Shown here: one piece after another, positions 778 through 14,992 of the stretch
Layout: each line of letters opens with the position of its first letter
Numbering within the stretch: position 1 is the first letter of the stretch
Assembly: GCA_043228905.1 (NCBI GenBank)
Contig: JBHGNT010000823.1
Coordinates: forward strand, 1 to 14,992
Origin: Azolla caroliniana
Taxonomy: Eukaryota > Plantae > Polypodiophyta
Length of the DNA: 14,992 bases
Reading direction: 5' to 3'
The notes under the pieces: model-generated
Database searches by the model: none
The model's input: the letters and a program-made list of their open reading frames with translations, nothing else
Told to the model about the DNA's origin: nothing
Program-made: the position numbers and the translations under genes

Positions 778-1488
778 TTAACGGCTCGGGCCGGAGTGGA
801 ATCTCCCCCTTCTTGCGAAGTTTCCTCGTTGGCCTCCGTTTTGCGGCCGAAATTGGGAGTTGTTGTCGTAGGTCGGACCTTGTCCGCCTTGTCCTTGGCC
901 GAATCGTCCTCTCGCTCGTCCGCATCCTCTTCCTCCATTAGAGTGCGTGTAGAGCATGTGGCATTCCGACTCATTGCTCCTTGTATGCACGTGGTTTTCT
1001 TCGACCAATAGCATTGATTGGAACTCGAACAAGGAGGGAGATTTCTCCCATGCTAGAACAACGGTTCGCATCACGCTGAATCGTGGTGCGAGGCCGCCGA
1101 GCCATATTTGCACCATCTCATCATCATCTATACTTACGCTTATTGAGCCGAGCGAGTCGCAAAGCTCCTTGATCTTCAAGGTGTATGACGTGATGGACAT
1201 GTCCCTTTGTTGAATGTTGTTCAACTCTTGGCGGAGTTGAAGCTTCCTCGCGGTCGTGTTGGCGGCGAAAATCTTTCGTAGATTTTCCCACGCTTCCTTC
1301 GGCGTCTTGGCTTCTCGAATGTAACCGAGCATGTGGTCATGAACACATGTCGCCAAACAATACATCACGCGGCTTGCGGCTTGCTCCCATGTCACGTATC
1401 CAGGAACCGCTTCGGCAGGTCGGTCTTCATGCGCTCCTTTGATGTAGCTCCAATAGCCTTGTCCGACAAGGTATTGGTGCATCAACAC
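778..1488 (-). pseudogene. gag: Copia gag (UBN2/Retrotran_gag_2-like) open segment, N-terminally truncated
   Basis: 236-aa ORF with the copia gag helical region and an RG-rich linker. The TAA at 778-780 is premature because the zinc knuckle follows in frame. Confidence 0.9.
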
Positions 1489-1836
1489 TTAATTTCTCTA
1501 AATATGAATGTGTTCCCAAATACATTATATGTCATCTTTCTCGCCTCTAGACGATATGTAGAATGTTCATTCCATCTATGATATGAAGGAACTTCACGGC
1601 CAAGGTAATGAAAATGGAGAGACCTATAAAAGCCTATAGTTAGGCTTGTGTAAGGGGAGAGAAGTGATGTAAGAAAAAAAAAACTATGAGACGACCAATA
1701 TTTCATTTCAAGTAATAAAGGTGAAAGTGAGCACTAGATCTAGATGTTTAACACCTTTTCCCATGAATGTTGCAATGGAGACCAAACATTGCGATTTTGA
1801 AAGGACTTTATGCAAACAAAGCATAGTTGAAATTGC

Positions 1837-1920
1837 AACCAACTGTCGGATTGTAACCAATGACCTAAGGACAGAAATCAACAACACAATCCTCCGCTCT
1901 ACCAACTAAGCTAAGCTGAA
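1837..1920 (-). pseudogene. Degenerate tRNA-Tyr-derived copy, long type
   Basis: Retains TAGCTTAGTTGGTAGAGCGGAGGA and TCCTTAGGTC. The anticodon position reads GTG, the B box is GGTTACAATCC and there is no acceptor stem. Confidence 0.88.
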
Positions 1921-2330
1921 AGTTGTGTGAAAGACTTCGTATTCATCCAATATAAAAGCAATGATGGATGGATGTTCCTAGCGACAACGCAACATGAATA
2001 ACATGTTTCCATTGATAGCTTAAATATAATACTTGATTTCAAGCTTGCAATGTTGCAAACCTATCAAATGGTTTAGAGGAAAATCAAATTTTTGATTTAA
2101 TAAAGGGAGGATACTCAGATAAACGGGAAGTGACAAAGAACGGAGGTGTTGTGCAAAGATAAATCGATAGATTCTATTAGGTGTGACATTTAAGACGAAA
2201 TTAATATTTCATTCTACATAATAAAGGTAAAAATGACCATTACATCTAAATGTAAACTACCTTTACCGATGAATGTTGCAATGCAGAGTGCACATTGCCA
2301 TTGTAAAAGGAATTTATGCAAGGAAATCAT

Positions 2331-2334
2331 AAAA
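2331..2334 (-). terminator. Candidate Pol III terminator T4, about 26 nt downstream of tRNA copy 1; repeated at each full-length copy
   Basis: Minus strand reads CAGCTTTTATG. The homologous site beside the pseudo copies lacks the T run. Confidence 0.55.
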
Positions 2335-2359
2335 GCTGAAATCGCAAGCAACTTCGCGT

Positions 2360-2443
2360 TCCGACCTGTCGGATTTGAACCAACGACCTAAGGATGAAAT
2401 TGAACACTACAATCCTCCGCTCTACCAACTGAGCTAAGATCGG
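2360..2443 (-). tRNA. tRNA-Tyr: tRNA-Tyr(GTA) copy 1, 11-nt intron; variant
   Basis: Cloverleaf intact with T5.G68 wobble. It has C32>T and intron TGTTCAATTTC, so it lacks the anticodon-intron pair. Confidence 0.75.
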
Positions 2444-2471
2444 AGGTGTGGAAAAGCTTCCATATTTCTCA

Positions 2472-2477
2472 ATTATA
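2472..2477 (-). promoter_or_regulatory. Upstream TATA-like element (TATAAT) at -34..-29 of tRNA copy 1; present or slightly varied at the other copies
   Basis: Plus-strand attata lies 29-34 bp beyond the tRNA 5' end. Plant Pol III tRNA genes typically have a TATA-like motif near -30. Confidence 0.7.
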
Positions 2478-2659
2478 GACGCAAAAATGGACACAACATC
2501 TATACCAGGTTTTGATTAATGACTAACATGTAATGTTGAATGTCAAGCTTCCAACATTGCAGATATATTATATTAGTGACCATTATGAGATGCTGGATTT
2601 TATATAGGGAAGATGTTTAGATGAACAAGGGGTTACAACGAACGGAGATACTACTTAAA

Positions 2660-2674
2660 GATAGATAGATAGAT
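2660..2674 (+). repeat. (GATA)3GAT microsatellite, once per unit; (GATA)4GAT at 5439-5457
   Basis: Read directly. The extra GATA explains the 768 versus 764 bp spacing. Confidence 0.85.
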
Positions 2675-2842
2675 TGTATTATATTTGACCTCTAAGACGA
2701 CAAATATTTCATTTCAAGTAATGAGGGTGAAAGGGAGCACTAGATCTACATGTTCAACACCTTTTCCCATGAATGTTGCAATGGAGACCACACATTGCGA
2801 TTGTGAAAGGAATTTATGCAAAGAAAGCATAGTTGAAATTGC

Positions 2843-2888
2843 AACCAGCTGTCGGATTATAACCAACGACCTAAGGATGGCAATCAAC
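2843..2888 (-). pseudogene. Truncated pseudo-tRNA 3' half of the short unit; also at 5626-5671, 7391-7436, 9156-9201, 11476-11521 and 14275-14320
   Basis: Only the T-arm, variable region and part of the intron remain. The sequence jumps from ...atcaac to gggaag... of the downstream spacer. Confidence 0.85.
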
Positions 2889-3123
2889 GGGAAGCGACAA
2901 AGAACGGAGGTGTTGTGCAAAGATAAATTGATAGATTCTATTAGGTGTGACATTTAAGACGGAATTTATATTTCATTCTACATAATAAAGGTAAAAATGA
3001 CCATTACATCTACATGTAAAACACCTTTACCGAAGCATGTTGCAATACAAAGTGCACATTGCCATTGGAAAAGGAATTTATGCAAGGAAATCATAAAAGC
3101 TGAAATCGCAAGCAACTTCGAGT

Positions 3124-3207
3124 TCCGATCTGTCGGATTTGAACCAACGACCTAAGGATGACAATAAACACTACAGTCCTCCGCTCTACCAACTGAGCTA
3201 AGATCGG
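3124..3207 (-). tRNA. tRNA-Tyr: tRNA-Tyr(GTA) copy 2, 11-nt intron
   Basis: CCGATCTTAGCTCAGTTGGTAGAGCGGAGGACTGTAG[TGTTTATTGTC]ATCCTTAGGTCGTTGGTTCAAATCCGACAGATCGGA; all stems pair, T5-A68. Confidence 0.9.
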
Positions 3208-3601
3208 AGGTGTGGAAAAGCTTCCATATTTCTCAATTATAGACGCAAAAGTGGACATCTATACCAAGTTTTGATTAATGACTAACATGTAATGCTGAAT
3301 GTCAAGCTTCCAACATTGCAGATATATTATATTAGTGAGCATTGTCAGATGCTGGATTTTATATAGGGATGATGTTTAGACGAACAAGGGGTTACAACGA
3401 ACGGAGGTATTGCTAAAAGATAGATGGATAGATTGTATTATATTTGACCTCTGAGACGAACAATATTTCATTTCACGTAATAAGGGTGAAAATGAGAACT
3501 AGATCTTGATGTTCAACACCTTTTCCCATGAATGTTGCAATGGAGACCAAACATTGCGATTGTGAAAGGAATTTATACAAACAAAGCATAGTTGAAATTG
3601 C

Positions 3602-3699
3602 AACCAACTGTCGGATTCGATATGTCGGATTGTAACCAACAACCTAAGGATGGAAATCAACAACACAATCCTCCGCTCTAACAACTAAGCTAAGCTGAA
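3602..3699 (-). pseudogene. Degenerate tRNA-Tyr-derived copy, long type, +14 bp variant
   Basis: As 1837-1920, with an extra gtcggattcgatat. Confidence 0.85.
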
Positions 3700-4138
3700 A
3701 GTTGTGTGAAAGACTTCGTATTCATCCAATATAGAAGCAATGATGGATGGATGTTCCTAGCGACAACGCAACATGAATAACCTGTTTCCATTGATAGCTT
3801 ACATATAATAATTGATTTCAAGCTTGCAATATTGCAAACCTGTTCAATGGTTTATAGCAAAGTAAAATTTTCGATTTAATAAAGGGACAATACTCAGATC
3901 AACGGGAAGTGACAAATAACGCAGGTGTTGTGCAAAGATAAATCGATAGATTCTATTAGGTGTGACATTTAAGACGGAATTTATATTTCATTCTACATAA
4001 TAAAGGTAAAAATGACCATTACATCTACATGTAAAACACCTTTACCGATGAATGTTGCAATGCAGAGTGCACATTGCTATTGGAAAAGGAATTTATGCAA
4101 AGAAATCATAAAAGATGAAATCACAAGCAACTTCGAGT

Positions 4139-4222
4139 TCCGACCTGTCGGATTTGAACCAACGACCTAAGGATTACAATGAACACTACAGTCCTCCGCT
4201 CTACCAACTGAGCTAAGATCGG
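4139..4222 (-). tRNA. tRNA-Tyr: tRNA-Tyr(GTA) copy 3, 11-nt intron
   Basis: Intact cloverleaf and A/B boxes, T5.G68, intron TGTTCATTGTA. Confidence 0.88.
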
Positions 4223-4615
4223 AGGTGTGGAAAAGCTTCATATTTCTCAATTATAGACGCAAAAATAGACATCTATACCAGGTTTTGATTAATGACTAAC
4301 ATGTAATGCTGAATGTCAAGCTTCCAACATTGCAGATATATTATATTAGTGAGCATTGTCAGATGCTGGATTTTATATAGGGATGATGTTTAGAGGAAGA
4401 AGGGGTTACAACGAACGGAGGTATTGCTTAAAGATAGATAGATAGATTGTATTATATTTGACCTCTGAGACGACCAATATTTCATTTCAAGTAATAAAGG
4501 TGAAAGTGAGCACTCGATCTAGATGTTTAACACCATTTCCCACGAATGTTGCAATGGAAACCACACATTGCGATTGTGAAAGGAATTTATGCAAAGAAAG
4601 CATAGTTGAAATTGC

Positions 4616-4699
4616 AACCAAGTGTCGGATTGTAACCAACGACCTAAGGATGGAAATCAACAACACAATCCTCCGCTCTACTAACTAAGCTAAGCTGAA
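4616..4699 (-). pseudogene. Degenerate tRNA-Tyr-derived copy, long type
   Basis: Paralogue of 1837-1920. Confidence 0.85.
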
Positions 4700-5138
4700 A
4701 GTTGTGTGGAAGACTTCGTATTCATCCAATATAAAAGCAATGATGGATGGATGTTTCTAGCAACAATGCAACATGAATAACATGTTTCCATTGATAGCTT
4801 ACATATAATACTTGATTTCAAGCTTGCAATGTTGCAAACCTATCAAATGGTTTAGAGGAAAATCAAATTTTTGATTTAATAAAGGGAGGATACTCAGATA
4901 AACGGGAAGTTACAAAGAACGGAGGTGTTGTGCAAAGATAAATCGATAGATTCTATTAGGTGTGACATTTAAGACGAAATTTATATTTCATTCTACATAA
5001 TAAAGGTAAAAATGACCATTACATCTAAATGTAAAATACCTTTACCGATGAATGTTGCAATGCAGAGTGCACATTGCCATTGTAAAACGAATTTATGCAA
5101 GGAAATCATAAAAGCTAAAATCCCAAGCAACTTCGAGT

Positions 5139-5222
5139 TCCGACCTGTCAGATTTGAACCAACGACCTAAGGATGAAATTGAACACTACAGTCCTCCGCT
5201 CTACCAACTGAGCTAAGATCGA
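5139..5222 (-). tRNA. tRNA-Tyr: tRNA-Tyr(GTA) copy 4; probably impaired
   Basis: C1>T alters the C1-G72 Tyr identity pair. Also C62>T and intron TGTTCAATTTC. Confidence 0.6.
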
Positions 5223-5906
5223 AGGTGTGGAAAAGCTTCCATATTTCTCAATTATCAACGCAAAAATGGACACGACATCTATACCAGGTTTTGATTAATG
5301 ACTAACATGTAATGCTGAATGTCAAGCTTCCAATATTGCAGATATATTATATTAGTGACCATTGTGAGATGCTGGATTTTATATAGGGAAGATGTTTAGA
5401 TGAACAAGGGGTTACAACGAACGGAGATACTAATTAAAGATAGATAGATAGATAGATTGTATTATATTTGACCTCTAAGACGACAAATATTTCATTTCAA
5501 GTAATGAGGGTGAAAGGGAGCACTAGATCTACATGTTCAAAACCTTTTCCCATGAATGTTGCAATGGAGACCACACATTGCGATTGTGAAAGGAATTTAT
5601 GCAAAGAAAGCATAGTTGAAATTGCAACCAACTGTCGGATTATAACCAATGACCTAAGGATGGCAATCAACGGGAAGTGACAAAGAACGGAGGTGTTGTG
5701 CAAAGATAAATTGATAGATTCTATTAGGTGTGACATTTAAGACGGAATTTATATTTCATTCTACATAATAAAGGTAAAAATGAGCATTACATCTACATGT
5801 AAAACACCTTTACCGAAGCATGTTGCAATACAAAGTGCACATTGCCATTGGAAAAGGAATTTATGCAAGGAAATCATAAAAGCTGAAATCGCAAGCAACT
5901 TCGAGT

Positions 5907-5990
5907 TCCGATCTGTCGGATTTGAACCAACGACCTAAGGATGACAATAAACACTACAGTCCTCCGCTCTACCAACTGAGCTAAGATCGG
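5907..5990 (-). tRNA. tRNA-Tyr: tRNA-Tyr(GTA) copy 5, 11-nt intron
   Basis: Same sequence as copy 2 (T5-A68). Confidence 0.9.
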
Positions 5991-6384
5991 AGGTGTGGAA
6001 AAGCTTCCATATTTCTCAATTATAGACGCAAAAGTGGACATCTATACCAGGTTTTGATTAATGACTAACATGTAATGCTGAATGTCAAGCTTCCAACATT
6101 GCAGATATATTATATTAGTGAGCATTGTGAGATGCTGGATTTTATATAGGGATGATGTTTAGACGAACAAGGGGTTACAACGAACGGAGGTATTGCTTAA
6201 AGATAGATAGATAGATTGTATTATATTTGACCTCTGAGACGAACAATATTTCATTTCACGTAATAAGGGTGAAAGTGAGAACTAGATCTTGATGTTCAAC
6301 ACCTTTTCCCATGAATGTTGCAATGGAGACCAAACATTGCGATTGTGAAAGGAATTTATGCAAACAAAGCATAGTTGAAATTGC

Positions 6385-6468
6385 AACCAACTGTCGGATT
6401 GTAACCAACGACCTAAGGATGGAAATAAACAACACAATCCTCCGCTCTACCAACTAAGCTAAGCTGAA
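6385..6468 (-). pseudogene. Degenerate tRNA-Tyr-derived copy, long type
   Basis: Paralogue of 1837-1920. Confidence 0.85.
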
Positions 6469-6907
6469 AGTTGTGTGAAAGACTTCGTATTCATCCAATA
6501 TAGAAGCAATAATGGATGGATGTTCCTAGCAAAAACGCAACATGAATAACATGTTTCGATTGATAGCGTACATATAATACTTGATTTCAAGCTTGCAATG
6601 TTGCAAACCTATCAAATGGTTAAGAGGAAAATCAAATTTTTGATTTAATAAAGGGAGGATACTCAGGTAAACGGGAAGTTACAAAGAACGGAGGTGTTGT
6701 GCAAAGATAAATCGATAGATTCTATTAGGTGTGACATTTAAGACGAAATTTATATTTCATTCTACATAATAAAGGTAAAAATGACCATTACATCTAAATG
6801 TAAAATACCTATATCGATGAATGTTGCAATGCAGAGTGGACAATGCCATTGTAAAAGGAATTTATGCAAGGAAATCATAAAAGCTAAAATCCCAAGCAAC
6901 TTCGAGT

Positions 6908-6991
6908 TCCGACCTGTCGGATTTGAACCAACGACCTAAGGATGACAATGAACACTACAGTCCTCCGCTCTACCAACTGAGCTAAGATCGG
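6908..6991 (-). tRNA. tRNA-Tyr: tRNA-Tyr(GTA) copy 6, 11-nt intron
   Basis: Intact, T5.G68, intron TGTTCATTGTC. Confidence 0.9.
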
Positions 6992-7671
6992 AGGTGTGGA
7001 AAAGCTTCCATATTTCTCAATTATAGACGCAAAAATGGACACAACATCTATACCAGGTTTTGATTAATGACTAACATGTAATGCTGAATGTCAAGCTTCC
7101 AACATTGCAGATATATTATATTAGTGACCATTGTGAGATGCTGGATTTTATATAGGGAAGATGTTTAGACGAACAAGGAGTTACAACGAACGGAGATACT
7201 ACTTAAAGATAGATAGATAGATTGTATTATATTTGACCTCGAAGACGACAAATATTTCATTTCAAGTAATCAGGGTGAAAGGGAGCACTAGATCTAGATG
7301 TTCCACACCTTTTCCCATGAATGTTGCAATGGAGACCACACATTGCGATTCTGAAAGGAATTTATGCAAAGAAAGCATAGTTGAAATTGCAACCAACTGT
7401 CGGATTGTAACCAACGACCTAAGGATGGCAATCAATGGGAAGGGACAAAGAACGGAGGTGTTGTGCAAAGATAAATCGATAGATTCTATTAGGTGTGACA
7501 TTTAAGACGGAATTTATATTTCATTCTACATAATAAAGGTAAAAATGACCATTACATCAAGATGTAAAACAACTTTACCGAAGAATGTTGCAATACAAAG
7601 TGCACATTGCCATTGGAAAAGGAATTTATGCAAGGAAATCATAAAAGCTGGAATCGCAAGCAACTTCGAGT

Positions 7672-7755
7672 TCCGATCTGTCGGATTTGAACCAACGTCC
7701 TAAGGATGACAATAAACACTACAATCCTCCGCTCTACCAACTGAGCTAAGATCGG
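7672..7755 (-). tRNA. tRNA-Tyr: tRNA-Tyr(GTA) copy 7; minor variant
   Basis: T5-A68, C32>T and T47>A; stems intact. Confidence 0.78.
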
Positions 7756-8149
7756 AGGTGTGGAAAAGCTTCAATATTTCTCAATTATAGACGCAAAAAT
7801 GGACATCTATACCAGGTTTTGATTAATGACTAACATGTAATGCTGAATGTCAAGCTTCCAACATTGCAGATATATTATATTAGTGAGCATTGTCAGATGC
7901 TGGATTTTATATAGGGATGATGTTTAGACGAACAAGGGGTTAAAACGAACGGAGGTATTGCTTAAAGATAGATAGATAGATTGTATTATATTTGACCTTT
8001 GAGACGACCAATATTTCATTTCAAGTAATAAAGGTGAAAGTGAGCACTAGATCTAGATTTTTAACACCTTTTCCCATTAATGTTGCAATGGAGACCACAC
8101 ATTGCGATTGTGAAAGGAATTTATGCAAAGAAAGCATAGTTGAAATTGC

Positions 8150-8233
8150 AACCAACTGTCGGATTGTAACCAACGACCTAAGGATGGAAATCAACAACAC
8201 AATCCTCCGCTCTACCAACTAAGCTAAGCTGAA
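8150..8233 (-). pseudogene. Degenerate tRNA-Tyr-derived copy, long type
   Basis: Paralogue of 1837-1920. Confidence 0.85.
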
Positions 8234-8672
8234 AGTTGTGTGGAAGACTTCGTATTCATCCAATATAGAAGCAATGATGGATGGATGTTCCTAGCAACAA
8301 TGCAACATGAATAACATGTTTCCATTGATAGCTTACATATAATACTTGATTTCAAGCTTGCAATGTTGCAAACCTATCAAATGGTTAAGAGGAAAATCAA
8401 ATTTTTGATTTAATAAAGGGAGGATACTCAGATAAACGGGAAGTTACAAAGAACGGAGGTGTTGTGCAAAGATAAATCGATAGATTCTATTAGGTGTGAC
8501 ATTTAAGACGAAATTTATATTTCATTCTACATAATAAAGGTAAAAATGACCATTACATCTTAATGTAAAATACCTATATCGATGAATGTTGCAATGCAGA
8601 GTGCACAATGCCATTGTAAAAGGAATTTATGCAAGGAAATCATAAAAGCTAAAATCCCAAGCAACTTCGAGT

Positions 8673-8756
8673 TTCGACCTATCGGATTTGAACCAACGAC
8701 CTAAGAATGACAATGAACACTACAGTCCTGCGCTCTACCAACTGAGCTAAGATCGG
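8673..8756 (-). pseudogene. tRNA-Tyr: tRNA-Tyr copy 8; likely pseudogene
   Basis: G72>A gives a C1.A72 mismatch. Also C65>T, C40>T and G27>C. Confidence 0.8.
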
Positions 8757-9437
8757 AAGTGTGGAAAAGCTTCCATATTTCTCAATTATAGACGCAAAAA
8801 TGGACACAACATCTATACCAGGTTTTGATTAATGACTAACATGTAATGCTGAATGTCAAGCTTCCAACATTGCAGATATATTATATTAGTGAGCATTGTC
8901 AAATACTGGATTTTATATAGGGATGATGTTTAGACGAACAAGGGGTTACAACGAACAGAGATACTACTTAAAGATAGATAGATAGATTGTATTATATTTG
9001 ACCTCTAAGACGACAAATATTTCATTTCAAGTAATAAGGGTGAAAGTGAGCACTAGATCTAGATGTTCAACACCTTTTCCCATGAATGTTGCAATGGAGA
9101 CCACACATTGCGATTGTGAAAGGAATTTATGCAAAGAAAGCATAGTTGAAATTGCAACCAACTGTCGGATTGTAACCAACGACCTAAGGATGGCAATCAA
9201 AGGGGAAGTGACAAAGAACAGAAGTGTTGTGCAAAGATAAATCGATAGATTCTATTAGGTGTGACATTTAAGACGGAATTTATATTTCATTCTACATAAT
9301 AAAGGTAGAAATGACCATTACATCTACATGTAAAACACCTTTACCGAAGAATGTTGCAATGCGAAGTGCACATTGCCATTGGAAAAGGAATTTATGCAAG
9401 GGAATCATAAAAGCTGAAATCGCAAGCAACTTTGAGT

Positions 9438-9521
9438 TCCGACCTGTCGGATTTGAACCAACGACCTAAGGATGACAATGAACACTACAGTCCTCCGCTC
9501 TACCAACTGAGCTAAGGTCGG
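9438..9521 (-). tRNA. tRNA-Tyr: tRNA-Tyr(GTA) copy 9, canonical acceptor stem
   Basis: CCGACCTTAGCTCAGTTGGTAGAGCGGAGGACTGTAG[TGTTCATTGTC]ATCCTTAGGTCGTTGGTTCAAATCCGACAGGTCGGA; matches plant cytosolic tRNA-Tyr as I recall it. Confidence 0.95.
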
Positions 9522-9920
9522 AGGTGTGGAAAAGCTTTCATATTTCTCCGTTATAGACGCAAAAATGGAGACAACATCTATATCGAGTTTTGATTGATGA
9601 CTAACATCTAATGCTGAATGTCAAGCCTACAACATTGCAGATATATTATATTAGTGAGCATTGTCATATTCACGATTTTATATAGGGATGATGTTTAGAC
9701 GAATAACGGGTTACAACGAACGGAGGTATAGCTTAAAGATAAATAAATAGATTGGATTATATTTGACCTCTGAGACAAACAATATTTCATTTCACGTAAT
9801 AAGGGTGAATGTGAGCACTAGATCTAGATGTTCAACACCTTCTCCCATGAATGTTGCAATGGAGACCAAACATTGCGATTGTGAATGGAATTTATGCAAA
9901 GAAAGCATAGTTGAAATTGC

Positions 9921-10018
9921 AACCAACTGTCGGATTCGATATGTCGGATTGTAACCAACAACCTAAGGATGGCAATCAACAACACAATCCTCCGCTCTAC
10001 CAACTAAGCTAAGGTGAA
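9921..10018 (-). pseudogene. Degenerate tRNA-Tyr-derived copy, long type, +14 bp variant
   Basis: Paralogue of 3602-3699. Confidence 0.85.
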
Positions 10019-10469
10019 AGTTGTGTGAAAGACTTCGTATTCATCCAATCTAGAAGCAACTAAGCTAAGGTCTACCAACTAAGCTTCCATATTTCTCAAT
10101 TATAGACGCAAAAATGGGCACAACATCTATACCAAGTTTTGATTGATGAATAACATGTAAAGCTGAATGTCAAGCCTGCAACATTGCAGATATATTATAT
10201 TAGTGAGCATTGTCAGATGCTGGATTTTATATAGGGATGATGTTTAGACGAACAAAGGGTTACAACGAACGGAGGTATTGCTTAAAGATAGATAGATAGA
10301 TTGTATTATATTTGACTTCTGAGACGACCAATATTTCATTTCAAGTAATAAAGGTGAAAGTGAGCACTAGATCTAGATGTTTAACACCTTTTCCCATGAA
10401 TGTTGCAATGGAGACCAAACATTGCGATTTTGACAGGACTTTATGCAAACAAAGCATAGTTGAAATTGC

Positions 10470-10553
10470 AACCAACTGTCGGATTGTAACCAATGACCTA
10501 AGGACAGAAATCAACAACACAATCCTCCGCTCTACCAACTAAGCTAAGCTGAA
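10470..10553 (-). pseudogene. Degenerate tRNA-Tyr-derived copy, long type
   Basis: Matches 1837-1920 at +8633 bp. Confidence 0.85.
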
Positions 10554-10992
10554 AGTTGTGTGAAAGACTTCGTATTCATCCAATATAAAAGCAATGATGG
10601 ATGGATGTTCCTAGCGACAACGCAACATGAATAACATGTTTCCATTGATAGCTTAAATATAATACTTGATTTCAAGCTTGCAATGTTGCAAACCTATCAT
10701 ATGGTTTAGAGGAAAATCAAATTTTTGATTTAATAAAGGGAGGATACTCCGATAAACGGGAAGTGACAAAGAACGGAGGTGTTGTGCAAAGATAAATCGA
10801 TAGATTCTATTAGGTGTGACATTTAAGACGAAATTAATATTTCATTCTACATAATAAAGGTAAAAATGACCATTACATCTAAATGTAAACTACCTTTACC
10901 GATGAATGTTGCAATGCAGAGTGCACATTGCCATTGTAAAAGGAATTTATGCAAGGAAATCATAAAAGCTGAAATAGCGAGCAACTTCGAGT

Positions 10993-11076
10993 TCCGACCT
11001 GTCGGATTTGAACCAACGACCTAAGGATGACAATGAACACTACAGTCCTCCGCTCTACCAACTGAGCTAAGATCGG
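10993..11076 (-). tRNA. tRNA-Tyr: tRNA-Tyr(GTA) copy 10, 11-nt intron
   Basis: Same sequence as copy 6 (T5.G68). Confidence 0.9.
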
Positions 11077-11756
11077 AGGTGTGGAAAAGCTTCCATATTT
11101 CTCAATTATAGACGCAAAAATGGACACAACATCTATACCAGGTTTTGATTAATGACTAACATGTAATGCTGAATGTCAAGCTTCCAACATTGCAGATATA
11201 TTATATTAGTGACCATTGTGAGATGCTGGATTTTATATAGGGAAGATGTTTAGATGAACAAGGGGTTACAACGAACGGAGATACTACTTAAAGATAGATA
11301 GATAGATTGTATTATATTTGACCTCTAAGACGACAAATATTTCATTTCAAGTAATGAGGGTGAAAGGGAGCACTAGATCTACATGTTCAACACCTTTTCC
11401 CATGAATGTTGCAATGGAGACCACACATTGCGATTGTGAAAGGAATTTATGCAAAGAAAGCATAGTTGAAATTGCAACCAGCTGTCGGATTATAACCAAC
11501 GACCTAAGGATGGCAATCAACGGGAAGTGACAAAGAACGGAGGTGTTGTGCAAAGCTAAATTGATAGATTCTATTAGGTGTGACATTTAAGACGGAATTT
11601 ATATTTCATTCTACATAATAAAGGTAAAAATGACCATTACATCTACATGTAAAACACCTTTACCGAAGCATGTTGCAATACAAAGTGCACATTGCCATTG
11701 GAAAAGGAATTTATGCAAGGAAATCATAAAAGCTGAAATCGCAAGCAACTTCGAGT

Positions 11757-11840
11757 TCCGATCTGTCGGATTTGAACCAACGACCTAAGGATGACAATAA
11801 ACACTACAGTCCTCCGCTCTACCAACTGAGCTAAGATCGG
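11757..11840 (-). tRNA. tRNA-Tyr: tRNA-Tyr(GTA) copy 11, 11-nt intron
   Basis: Same sequence as copy 2 (T5-A68). Confidence 0.9.
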
Positions 11841-12234
11841 AGGTGTGGAAAAGCTTCCATATTTCTCAATTATAGACGCAAAAGTGGACATCTATACCAA
11901 GTTTTGATTAATGACTAACATGTAATGCTGAATGTCAAGCTTCCAACATTGCAGATATATTATATTAGTGAGCATTGTCAGATGCTGGATTTTATATAGG
12001 GATGATGTTTAGACGAACAAGGGGTTACAACGAACGGAGGTATTGCTAAAAGATAGATGGATAGATTGTATTATATTTGACCTCTGAGACGAACAATATT
12101 TCATTTCACGTAATAAGGGTGAAAGTGAGAACTAGATCTTGATGTTCAACACCTTTTCCCATGAATGTTGCAATGGAGACCAAACATTGCGATTGTGAAA
12201 GGAATTTATACAAACAAAGCATAGTTGAAATTGC

Positions 12235-12332
12235 AACCAACTGTCGGATTCGATATGTCGGATTGTAACCAACAACCTAAGGATGGAAATCAACAACACA
12301 ATCCTCCGCTCTAACAACTAAGCTAAGCTGAA
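12235..12332 (-). pseudogene. Degenerate tRNA-Tyr-derived copy, long type, +14 bp variant
   Basis: Matches 3602-3699 at +8633 bp. Confidence 0.85.
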
Positions 12333-12771
12333 AGTTGTGTGAAAGAATTCGTATTCATCCAATATAGAAGCAATGATGGATGGATGTTCCTAGCGACAAC
12401 GCAACATGAATAACCTGTTTCCATTGATAGCTTACATATAATACTTGATTTCAAGCTTGCAATATTGCAAACCTGTTCAATGGTTTATAGCAAAGTAAAA
12501 TTTTCGATTTAATAAAGGGACAATACTCAGATCAACGGGAAGTGACAAATAACGCAGGTGTTGTGCAAAGATAAATCGATAGATTCTATTAGGTGTGACA
12601 TTTAAGACGGAATTTATATTTCATTCTACATAATAAAGGTAAAAATGACCATTACATCTACATGTAAAACACCTTTACCGATGAATGTTGCAATGCAGAG
12701 TGCACATTGCTATTGGAAAAGGAATTTATGCAAAGAAATCATAAAAGATGAAATCACAAGCAACTTCGAGT

Positions 12772-12855
12772 TCCGACCTGTCGGATTTGAACCAACGACC
12801 TAAGGATGACAATGAACACTACAGTCCTCCGCTCTACCAACTGAGCTAAGGTCGG
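12772..12855 (-). tRNA. tRNA-Tyr: tRNA-Tyr(GTA) copy 12, canonical acceptor stem
   Basis: Same sequence as copy 9 (C5-G68). Confidence 0.95.
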
Positions 12856-13254
12856 AGGTGTGGAAAAGCTTCCATATTTCTCCGTTATAGACGCAAAAAT
12901 GGAGACAACATTTATATCGAGTTTTGATTGATGACTAACATCTAATGCTGAATGTCAAGCCTACAACATTGCAGATATATTATATTAGTGAGCATTGTCA
13001 TATTCACGATTTTATATAGGGATGATGTTTAGACGAATAACGGGTTACAACGAACGGAGGTATAGCTTAAAGATAGATAAATAGATTGGATTATATTTGA
13101 CCTCTGAGACAAACAATATTTCATTTCACGTAATAAGGGTGAATGTGAGCACTAGATCTAGATGTTCAACACCTTCTCCCATGAATGTTGGAATGGAGAC
13201 CAAACATTGCGATTGTGAATGGAATTTATGCAAAGAAAGCATAGTTGAAATTGC

Positions 13255-13352
13255 AACCAACTGTCGGATTCGATATGTCGGATTGTAACCAACAACATAA
13301 GGATGGCAATCAACAACACAATCCTCCGCTCTAACAACTAAGCTAAGCTGAA
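13255..13352 (-). pseudogene. Degenerate tRNA-Tyr-derived copy, long type, +14 bp variant
   Basis: Paralogue of 9921-10018 at +3334 bp. Confidence 0.85.
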
Positions 13353-13791
13353 AGTTGTGTGAAAGACTTCGTATTCATCCAATATAGAAGCAATGATGGA
13401 AGGATGTTCCTAGGGACAACGCAACATGAATAACATGTTTCCATTGATAGCTTACATATAATACTTGATTTCGAGCTTGCAATATTGCAAACCTGTTCAA
13501 TGGTTTATAGCAAAGTCAAATTTTCGATTTAATAAAGGGACAATACTCAGATAAACGGGAAGTGACAAAGAACGGAGGTGTTGTGCAAAGATAAATCGAT
13601 AGATTCTATTAGGTGTGACATTTAAGACGAAATTTATATTTCATTCTACATAATAAAGGTAAAAATGACCATTACCTCTACATGTAAAACACCTTTGCCG
13701 AAGAATGTTGCAATGCAGAGTGCACATTGCTATTGGAAAAGGAATTTATGCAAGGAAATCATAAAAGCTGAAATCACAAGCAACTTCGAGT

Positions 13792-13875
13792 TCCGACCTG
13801 TTAGATTTGTACCAACGACCTAAGGATTACAATGAACACTACAGTCCTCCGCTCTACCAACTAAGCTAAGGTCGG
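13792..13875 (-). pseudogene. tRNA-Tyr: tRNA-Tyr copy 13; likely pseudogene
   Basis: B box is broken (GGTACAAATCT; T55>A, C62>T). Also G63>A and C13>T. Confidence 0.8.
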
Positions 13876-14555
13876 AGGTGTGGAAAAGCTTCCATATTTC
13901 TCAATTATAGACGCAAAAATGGACACAACATTTATACCAAGTTTTGATTGATGACTAACATCTAATGTTGAATGTGAAGCCTACAACATTGTAAATATAT
14001 TTTATTAGTTACCATTGTTAGATTTTCGATTTTATATAGGGATGATGTTTAGACGAACAAGGGGTTACAATGAACAGATGTATATCTTAAAGATAGATAG
14101 ATAGATTGTATTATATTTGACATCTGAGACGAACAATATTTCATTTAACGTAATAAGGGTGAAAGTGAGCACTCGATCTAGATGTTCAACACCTTTTCCC
14201 ATGAATGTTGCAATGGAGACCACACATTGCGATTCTGAAAGGAATCTATGCAAAGAAAGCATAGTTGAAATTGCAACCAACTGTCGGATTGTAACCAAAG
14301 ACCTAAGGATGGCAATGAACGGGAAGTGACAAAGAGCGGAGGTGTCGTGCAAAGATAAATCGATTGATTCTATTAGGTGTGACATTTAAGACAGAATTTA
14401 TATTTTATTATACATAATAAAGGTAAAAATGACCATTACATCTACATGTAAAACACCTTTATCGAAGAATGTTGCAATGCAAAGTGCACATTGCCATTGG
14501 TAAAGGAATTTATGCAAGGAAATCATAAAAGCTGAAATTGCAAGCAACTTCGAGT

Positions 14556-14639
14556 TCCGACCTGTCAGATTTGAACCAACGACCTAAGGATGACAGTGAA
14601 CACTACAGTCCTCCGCTCTACCAACTGAGCTAAGGGCCC
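14556..14639 (-). pseudogene. tRNA-Tyr: tRNA-Tyr copy 14; acceptor stem disrupted
   Basis: The 5' strand GGGCCCT cannot pair fully with AGGTCGG. Also C62>T. Confidence 0.8.
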
Positions 14640-14992
14640 AAGTGTGGGTAAGCTTGCATATTTCTTAATTATAGACGCAAAAATGGACACAACATTTATA
14701 CCGAGTTTTGATTGATGACTAACATGTAATGTTGAATGTCAAGCCTACAACATTGCAGATATATTATATTAGTGACCATTGTCAAATTTTCGATTTTATA
14801 TAGGGATGATGTTTAGACGAACAACGGGTTACAACGAACGGAGGTATATCTTAAAGATAGATAGATAGATTGTATTATATTTGACCTCTGAGACGAACAA
14901 TATTTCATTTCACGTAATAAGGGTGAAAGTGAGCACTAGATCTAGATGTTCAACACCTTTTCCCATGAATGTTGCAATGGAGACCACACAGT

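Follow-up and report, generated by a model that had tools for sequence, protein, structure and literature searches.

Why would a plant genome hold a long row of tRNA-Tyr genes in which each gene is followed by a degenerate relative of itself? We consider this question for a stretch of DNA from Azolla caroliniana (Polypodiophyta), namely positions 1 to 14,992 of contig JBHGNT010000823.1 (assembly GCA_043228905.1), hereafter the window, in which a tandem array of tRNA-Tyr(GUA) genes (T) and Tyr-derived pseudo-tRNAs (P) occupies nearly everything to the right of a retrotransposon fragment. We consider it probable that the locus is a nuclear tandem tRNA-Tyr(GUA) cluster built from a gene-pseudogene dimer, with T copies that are competent for transcription by RNA polymerase III (Pol III) and constrained in sequence, and that the array is probably methylated and mostly silent. 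Plant clusters of tandem tRNA genes (tDNAs) have been studied almost solely in Arabidopsis, where the cluster of Ser-Tyr-Tyr (SYY) tDNAs is a silenced reserve that is activated in the cells of the root cap. A second tRNA-Tyr array, an independent one, offers a natural comparison, in which genes filtered for function stand next to paired pseudogenes that decay, and such a comparison could show whether tyrosine-tRNA arrays recur as an answer to the same need.

We begin with the extent of the array. It occupies positions 1687..14992 on the minus strand (13.3 kb) and continues past the right end of the window. Its left edge, at 1684-1687, is where the homology of the leftmost unit to the interior units ends, and the GC content switches there from 51% in the flank to 35-37% in the array. 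The repeats are detected by a direct-repeat tool, which gives families of 14-15 copies each with spacings of ~760 and ~1010 bp, and by self-BLAST, in which each segment of 1684-14992 aligns to several others with 91-97% identity; Tandem Repeats Finder reports no array, the period being greater than its 500-bp limit. The Rfam tRNA model gives 23 matches at or above its gathering score, all on the minus strand and spanning 1837-14635, and ARAGORN in bacterial mode gives 11 tRNAs within the array. Using the conserved core of the D arm and anticodon stem as an anchor, 23 elements are placed in register, and a 17-nt pseudo-tRNA motif occurs 25 times where 0.01 occurrences are expected by chance. 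The contents of the array are 14 full-length intron-containing T genes, nine P copies and six 3' halves of P, the last found by motif search.

The 23 tRNA-like elements are without exception Tyr or Tyr-derived, and the array spacers contain no other Rfam family. With six T genes arranged head-to-tail in 2360-6991, the locus is a tandem tDNA cluster by the published definition of at least five tDNAs within 5 kb (PMC13437025). A tRNA-Ser gene, the defining feature of SYY, was looked for in the units and is absent; a search of one unit for inverted repeats like those of miniature inverted-repeat transposable elements finds none, and the array has no open reading frame (ORF) above 106 aa. An earlier, sequence-only reading of this DNA had seen more than 13 kb of head-to-tail repeats starting at 1687, and a single-isotype array of genes and pseudogenes. 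Rfam and the self-comparison confirm both the start and the repeats, the 23 Tyr-type elements bear out the single isotype, and the location of the genes on the minus strand is a correction to it.

How are the elements ordered? Behind each T comes either a P or a half-P, with one extra P (5' end 10018). The basic unit is the T-P dimer of ~1.0 kb. When a 764-bp T-to-T interval is aligned to a 1001-bp T-P-T interval, the 764-bp unit is seen to be the dimer minus 246 bp, the deletion having taken spacer and the 5' half of P and left the P 3' half. The commonest higher-order unit, (T-halfP)(T-P), measures ~1.77 kb, and part of the array consists of plain dimers of ~1.015 kb each. The unit had been described earlier as a gene with one degenerate sibling, which holds for the dimer; the arrangement as a whole is really hierarchical, from the dimer through its deletion derivative to the 1.77-kb higher-order unit. 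The longest self-match covers 4.65 kb (1687-6336 against 10320-14990) with 95.4% identity. Its exact offset of 8633 bp makes it a super-repeat above the 1.77-kb unit.

The divergence among the units carries information about how they arose. T and P are homologous, with ~70% identity, over all 480 bp of the comparison, from 150 bp before the tRNA to 250 bp after it, and the divergence of their consensus sequences is 30% in the upstream part, 20% in the tRNA body and 25% in the downstream part; likeness is 92-95% among T copies and 90-93% among P copies. A tree of the T flanks, with the tRNA excluded, contains three well-supported haplogroups and two mosaic units, and the position of a gene in the higher-order unit (Ta or Tb) defines no clades in it. 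Haplogroups, mosaics and the lack of position clades together point to unequal exchange in several registers. We propose that an ancestral monomer of ~0.5 kb, a tRNA gene with its flanks, was duplicated, one copy staying the gene T and the other decaying to P; that the resulting T-P dimer (~1.0 kb) would then have been amplified by unequal crossing-over; that T and P would have recombined across their homologous downstream regions, losing the 246 bp and producing the 764-bp variant; and that variant and dimer would have joined into the 1.77-kb higher-order unit, amplified in turn and partly reshuffled. The locus had also been called rDNA-like, a label that has to be given up: homologous units differ by 3-9% (they are only 91-97% identical), so there is no strong homogenisation.

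Next, we examine the T copies as genes. Each is 84 nt long (n = 14), with an exon 1 of 37 nt that ends in the anticodon loop CTGTAG, an 11-nt intron at the canonical position 37/38 in all 14, and an exon 2 of 36 nt; the intron has five sequence variants, among them TGTTTATTGTC and TGTTCAATTTC. The A box (TAGCTCAGTTGG) and the B box (GGTTCAAATCC) both fit the consensus. TATA(A/T), a plant-type element, stands at -34 (once at -33) upstream of 13 of the 14 copies, and the first downstream TTTT, present in every copy, is found at +26, or at +19 in three of them. Minimum-free-energy folding did not recover the cloverleaf, and explicit checks of the standard tRNA positions are used instead, covering in each copy the 21 pairs of the cloverleaf and 18 positions that are invariant or serve identity (U8, A14, G18, G19, A21, U33, G34, U35, A36, R37, G53, T54, T55, C56, R57, A58, C61 and A73). 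In eleven copies every pair is unbroken and all 18 positions are kept (C1-G72 or U1.G72, A73 and G34-U35-A36 included); those with 5' ends at 14639, 13875 and 8756 fail the check. The Rfam tRNA score is 57-60 bits for ten copies.

The T copies thus have the form of nuclear tRNA-Tyr(GUA) genes, with the cloverleaf, the GTA anticodon, the Tyr identity elements and a short intron at 37/38, and by sequence they qualify as candidate Pol III type-2 genes, with A and B boxes, a TATA-like element and a T run. In the 11 intact copies the two boxes would serve TFIIIC, the TATA-like element at -34 would serve TFIIIB, and the T4 run at +19 or +26 would act as terminator; the 11-nt intron would be excised by the tRNA splicing machinery. 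Full-length tRNA-Tyr(GTA) genes with A and B boxes, a TATA-like element at -30 and a T4 run are what the sequence-only reading had described, and the elements stand as it said, except that the TATA lies at -34 and that three of the 14 "full-length" genes are broken.

The P copies (n = 9) present a different picture. Their acceptor stem is mispaired, their anticodon loop is altered (G36, T37), and their T loop reads TTACAAT (A56, C57), so that the B box is lost; within 80 nt downstream of them there is no TTTT. A subtype, P2, is P1 with ~14 extra nucleotides after the T loop, which repeat AATCCGACA. The P copies are dead, and they clearly derive from the same tRNA-Tyr gene as T.

Have the T copies been kept as genes, or is the array an inert tRNA-derived satellite, that is, amplified junk in heterochromatin rich in transposable elements (TEs), in which the tRNAs decay neutrally and the intact ones are owed to fairly recent amplification? 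The pattern of substitutions argues against such a satellite. There are 16 exon substitution events, of which six are disruptive (of a pair or an invariant base) where the array's own mutation spectrum predicts 63.5%, too few for neutral decay (one-sided p = 0.03), and all six are confined to the three dead T copies. When real spacer variation, including variants shared between copies, is transferred onto the tRNA, a mean of 3.8 of 14 copies stay intact (sd 2.6), against the 11 observed, and at least 11 stay intact in 0.8% of the trials (P about 0.008); since the test windows overlap and the copies are related by descent, this P value and the one above are approximate. Two of the three G-to-A exon events turn a U.G pair into U-A. 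The states of the pair 5:68 (C-G, U.G and U-A) form a compensatory series that maps onto the three flank haplogroups, one each, with strong support. The T consensus is still a flawless tRNA-Tyr despite the 25-30% divergence of the T and P flanks. The pattern shows filtering for an intact cloverleaf, which implies that the T copies are, or recently were, used; as evidence of purifying selection on them, present or recent, we rate it moderate. That the tRNA bodies evolve neutrally had been named in advance as a mark of an inert satellite. What is found is an excess of intact copies and a shortage of disruptive changes, with a raw diversity only slightly lower in the exons. The elements are listed in Table 1.

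Table 1. Elements of the tRNA-Tyr array and the retrotransposon fragment in its left flank (positions in the window; Ta and Tb, position in the higher-order unit)
Element	Position	Strand	Evidence and remarks
tRNA-Tyr(GUA), intact, C5-G68, Tb	12772..12855	-	Rfam 60.3 bits; all pairs and invariant bases intact; TATAA at -34, TTTT at +26
tRNA-Tyr, intact, C5-G68, Ta	9438..9521	-	Rfam 60.3 bits
tRNA-Tyr, intact, U5-A68, Ta	11757..11840	-	Rfam 60.2 bits
tRNA-Tyr, intact, U5-A68, Ta	5907..5990	-	Rfam 60.2 bits
tRNA-Tyr, intact, U5-A68, Ta	3124..3207	-	Rfam 60.2 bits
tRNA-Tyr, pairs intact, U5-A68, U32 and A47 variants, Ta	7672..7755	-	Rfam 59.7 bits
tRNA-Tyr, intact, U5.G68 wobble, Tb	10993..11076	-	Rfam 58.1 bits
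tRNA-Tyr, intact, U5.G68, Tb	6908..6991	-	Rfam 58.1 bits
tRNA-Tyr, intact, U5.G68, Tb	4139..4222	-	Rfam 58.1 bits
tRNA-Tyr, pairs intact, U5.G68, U32, Tb	2360..2443	-	Rfam 57.6 bits
tRNA-Tyr, passes the check but weakened: U1.G72, U62, five G.U pairs, upstream TATA lost, Tb	5139..5222	-	Rfam 48.5 bits
Broken tRNA-Tyr: C27, A72, U40, U65; two broken pairs	8673..8756	-	Rfam 47.2 bits
Broken tRNA-Tyr: A55 in T loop and B box	13792..13875	-	Rfam 53.5 bits
Broken tRNA-Tyr: 5' acceptor strand replaced (G1, G2, C4), three broken pairs	14556..14639	-	Rfam 38.1 bits
Pseudo-tRNA P1 (anticodon and T loop destroyed)	1837..1920	-	Rfam 33 bits
Pseudo-tRNA P1	4616..4699	-	Rfam, position check
Pseudo-tRNA P1	6385..6468	-	Rfam, position check
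Pseudo-tRNA P1	8150..8233	-	Rfam, position check
Pseudo-tRNA P1	10470..10553	-	Rfam, position check
Pseudo-tRNA P2	3616..3699	-	Rfam, register alignment
Pseudo-tRNA P2, extra copy directly after a P1	9935..10018	-	Rfam, register alignment
Pseudo-tRNA P2	12249..12332	-	Rfam, register alignment
Pseudo-tRNA P2	13269..13352	-	Rfam, register alignment
P 3' half from the 246-bp deletion, ends approximate	2843..2884	-	Motif match 2850-2866; deletion mapped
P 3' half, ends approximate	5626..5667	-	Motif match
P 3' half, ends approximate	7391..7432	-	Motif match, deletion alignment
P 3' half, ends approximate	9156..9197	-	Motif match
P 3' half, ends approximate	11476..11517	-	Motif match
P 3' half, ends approximate	14275..14316	-	Motif match
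Ty1/copia gag fragment, left flank, outside array	778..1488	-	Pfam PF14223, E = 3.7e-20; very high contig depth

We turn to the chromatin in which the array may lie. GC-to-AT changes number 0.25 per GC site against 0.067 per AT site for AT-to-GC changes (a 3.7-fold bias), and the observed/expected ratio of CpG falls from 1.29 in the flank to 0.75 in the array. This spectrum fits the deamination of methylated cytosines. The array also stands beside retrotransposon sequence, as had been noticed before, with a copia gag fragment in its left flank. Because of the GC-to-AT excess, the retrotransposon neighbourhood and the precedent of Arabidopsis, we regard the array as likely to be cytosine-methylated, silent in most tissues and expressed at most conditionally.

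Is the array seen in other sequence collections? The best public runs (organism A, DNA, several studies) contain ~1/3 of the sampled 31-letter words; the fraction is 0.21 in organism B and 0.14 in a leaf metagenome. When contigs are aligned to 1300-2900 (1,601 letters) at 80% likeness, 29 of 30 bins are covered in organism A and 30 of 30 in organism B, at 90-99% likeness, and in organism C, from the same study as one of the A runs, only the tRNA body and the retroelement are covered and the spacers are not. The array family is common to organisms A and B and absent, or more than 20% diverged, in C. At tRNA position 5 (place 2439) the depth is ~97% canonical C5 in A and B and 100% in C; U5 is carried by 10 of the 14 array genes, yet reaches ~2.5% of contig depth. 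The dominance of C5 means that U5 marks the array and that most tRNA-Tyr-like sequence lies elsewhere. The T5 allele, proposed earlier as specific to the array, thus serves as such, and together with the states U5.G68 and U5-A68 and the intron variants it makes expression of the array directly testable. The same proposal for T50/A64 fails, for a metagenome plant contig has an identical exon 2. This contig (ENA ERZ1034377, 1-2177), the one plant contig matched in a metagenome scan with an exon-2 pattern, contains a plant PPR-type gene and, behind it, a tRNA-Tyr that has decayed, with a degenerate 5' half and a score below the Rfam threshold; a metagenome scan with an intron-spanning pattern gave no match.

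The spacers show a feature of their own in these contigs. The pieces 2218-2325 and 2758-2811 have a contig depth of at least 10^4 in A and B, as high as that of the retrotransposon flank, and 2261-2297 also occurs, flanked on either side by unrelated sequence, in organism C and in a run that is guessed to be RNA. The high depth and the foreign surroundings mean that part of the spacer is shared with a very abundant dispersed repeat. The abundant piece has no match in the window's own flank, and a comparison of the spacer with the left flank finds no homology. It is overlapped by a GCAATG/CATTGC hairpin; in the downstream region of every T and P copy, at about +50 to +75 (e.g., 2270-2300), its stem is kept, and the loops differ between T and P. 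An estimate of copy number from contig depth was rejected, the figures being inconsistent.

Several observations weigh against the reading of the array as a constrained, mostly silent gene cluster. The exon diversity (pi = 0.044) is near that of the spacers (0.066-0.075), with ~15% of the 72-column spacer windows as low, and the diversity rate alone does not reject neutrality. The significance of the constraint tests is approximate, as said above, and functional tRNA-Tyr genes elsewhere could, by gene conversion, have produced a pattern that looks like selection. The CAA triplet at -1 to -20, which is important in angiosperm tDNAs (PMC7544208), is absent from T (the sequence before +1 reads ...GGAAGCTTTTCCACACCT) and is carried by the P copies, although the CAA rule may be inapplicable outside angiosperms. 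The T4 run is a minimal terminator. The methylation is read from the mutation spectrum alone. In the 31-letter word search no run recorded as RNA contains the array, and the run guessed to be RNA covers just a 37-nt repeat piece of it; from contigs one cannot read how much of an RNA there is or where it begins and ends, and short RNAs readily go missing. An inert satellite would agree with the exon diversity and the absence of the array from RNA runs, and equally with the GC-to-AT bias, the 3-9% divergence of the units, and the death of three of 14 genes, all nine P and all six half-P copies. Set against the excess of intact copies, the shortage of disruptive changes, the two G-to-A events that turn U.G into U-A and the flawless consensus, we judge the satellite unlikely, and keep the constrained cluster as the preferred reading.

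If the genes are filtered for function, the array could instead be a constitutively active dosage array, a main source of tRNA-Tyr, transcribed at all times, in a genome where arrays hold much of the tRNA supply. The intact promoter and terminator elements and the constraint signal agree with this proposal, as does the report of ~7,500 tRNA genes (and more than 10,000 tRNA-like sequences) in the fern Azolla filiculoides, which has been attributed to genome duplication and repeats (10.1101/2021.12.21.473619, PMC13578239). The small share of U5 in contig depth, the rest being canonical C5, speaks against a main source; the deamination-type bias and the TE neighbours point to repressed chromatin; and the clustered tDNAs of Arabidopsis are silent under standard conditions (PMC7544208). 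A permanently active array is therefore improbable in our view. That the array acts as a structural or regulatory element (a TFIIIC-bound chromatin boundary, or a source of tRNA-derived or 24-nt small RNAs) and not through mature tRNA is very improbable, for the many regularly spaced B boxes beside TE sequence are compatible with it but no evidence for it, nothing in the data requires it, the constraint spans the whole cloverleaf including the acceptor stem and anticodon and not the B box alone, and the P copies have lost their B box (A56, C57).

The left flank deserves a brief description. Contig depth is 10^4-10^5 over the gag part, 2 x 10^3-2 x 10^4 over a further highly repeated piece that sits between the gag fragment and the array, and 10^1-10^3 over most of the array. 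The junction carries an A11 run at ~1672-1685. A second high-copy piece, at ~1570-1677, ends in this run by the array junction; it may represent the tail of a retroposon that inserted into the array in plus-strand orientation. The flank 1484-1686 is a mosaic, the gag homology of most genomic copies diverging past 1477-1483 (loose contig ends). The left edge looks like one or more TE insertions and need not be the true end of the array. Within the copia element there is an imperfect 30/39-bp tandem repeat (537-669), which on the minus strand encodes, immediately behind the gag domain, a recurring HNSD(Y/R)(E)DRGGMY-like motif (ORF 442-714), and relatives of the gag protein are found only in ENA and JGI metagenome contigs.

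What would the preferred reading, a constrained and mostly silent tRNA-Tyr cluster, mean beyond this locus? A wider proposal makes the array a tRNA-Tyr reservoir on which a non-flowering plant draws conditionally, evolved independently of the SYY cluster of Brassicaceae and part of a genome-wide set of methylation-gated higher-order arrays of many isotypes. We hold this to be doubtful, a speculation more than an expectation. If it were true, tandem tDNA arrays would be an old and recurrent way of regulating tRNA supply in land plants and not an oddity of Brassicaceae, and the extreme tRNA gene counts reported in some ferns would be explained. On the evidence of the window, the useful parts are the clear hierarchy, the constraint signal and the allele markers; the array adds an example and not a new principle.

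Finally, we compare the array with known systems. Plant tDNA clusters are established: Arabidopsis has tandem clusters of tDNAs for Pro, Cys and Ser-Tyr-Tyr (PMC7544208, PMC12308677, PMC13437025), and a 2026 survey finds Pro, Ser and Tyr to be the most often clustered isotypes in angiosperms and SYY to be nearly Brassicaceae-specific (PMC13437025). The locus had been put forward as being of an undescribed kind, a claim that we withdraw, given that clusters with tRNA-like pseudogenes are well described in plants and that Tyr often clusters (PMC7544208, PMC12308677, PMC13437025). For ferns, our literature searches gave tRNA gene counts only and no description of tandem tRNA arrays. The single-isotype homoclusters of other plants (tRNA-Pro and tRNA-Cys in Arabidopsis, tRNA-Ile and tRNA-Ala in maize, tRNA-Gln in barley; PMC13437025, PMC10701932) are likewise compact and come from local tandem duplication. 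They differ in isotype, and the regular gene-pseudogene dimer with its deletion derivative as repeat units is particular to the present array.

The closest likeness is to SYY, and it is one of organisation. On chromosome 1 of Arabidopsis thaliana SYY comprises 27 units of ~1.5 kb, in which 13 of 54 Tyr copies are tRNA-like pseudogenes (PMC7544208, PMC12308677, PMC2886086); its genes keep their canonical cis-elements, are silenced by DNA methylation and are reactivated in root-cap cells (PMC7544208, PMC12308677). Both are multi-kb tandem arrays of intron-containing tRNA-Tyr(GUA) genes with a three-element higher-order unit (~1.5 kb there, 1.77 kb here), both keep canonical Pol III elements among interspersed tRNA-like pseudogenes, and both appear to have grown by segmental duplication of whole units; the setting is shown to be heterochromatic in SYY and is probably so here. 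The two also differ. The third element is a tRNA-Ser in SYY only and a long-dead Tyr copy here, the units are more diverged in this array, and the Tyr1 and Tyr2 positions define clades in SYY (PMC13437025), whereas the position in the unit does not do so here. Moreover, SYY is nearly confined to Brassicaceae, and the present array comes from Azolla caroliniana, one of the Polypodiophyta.

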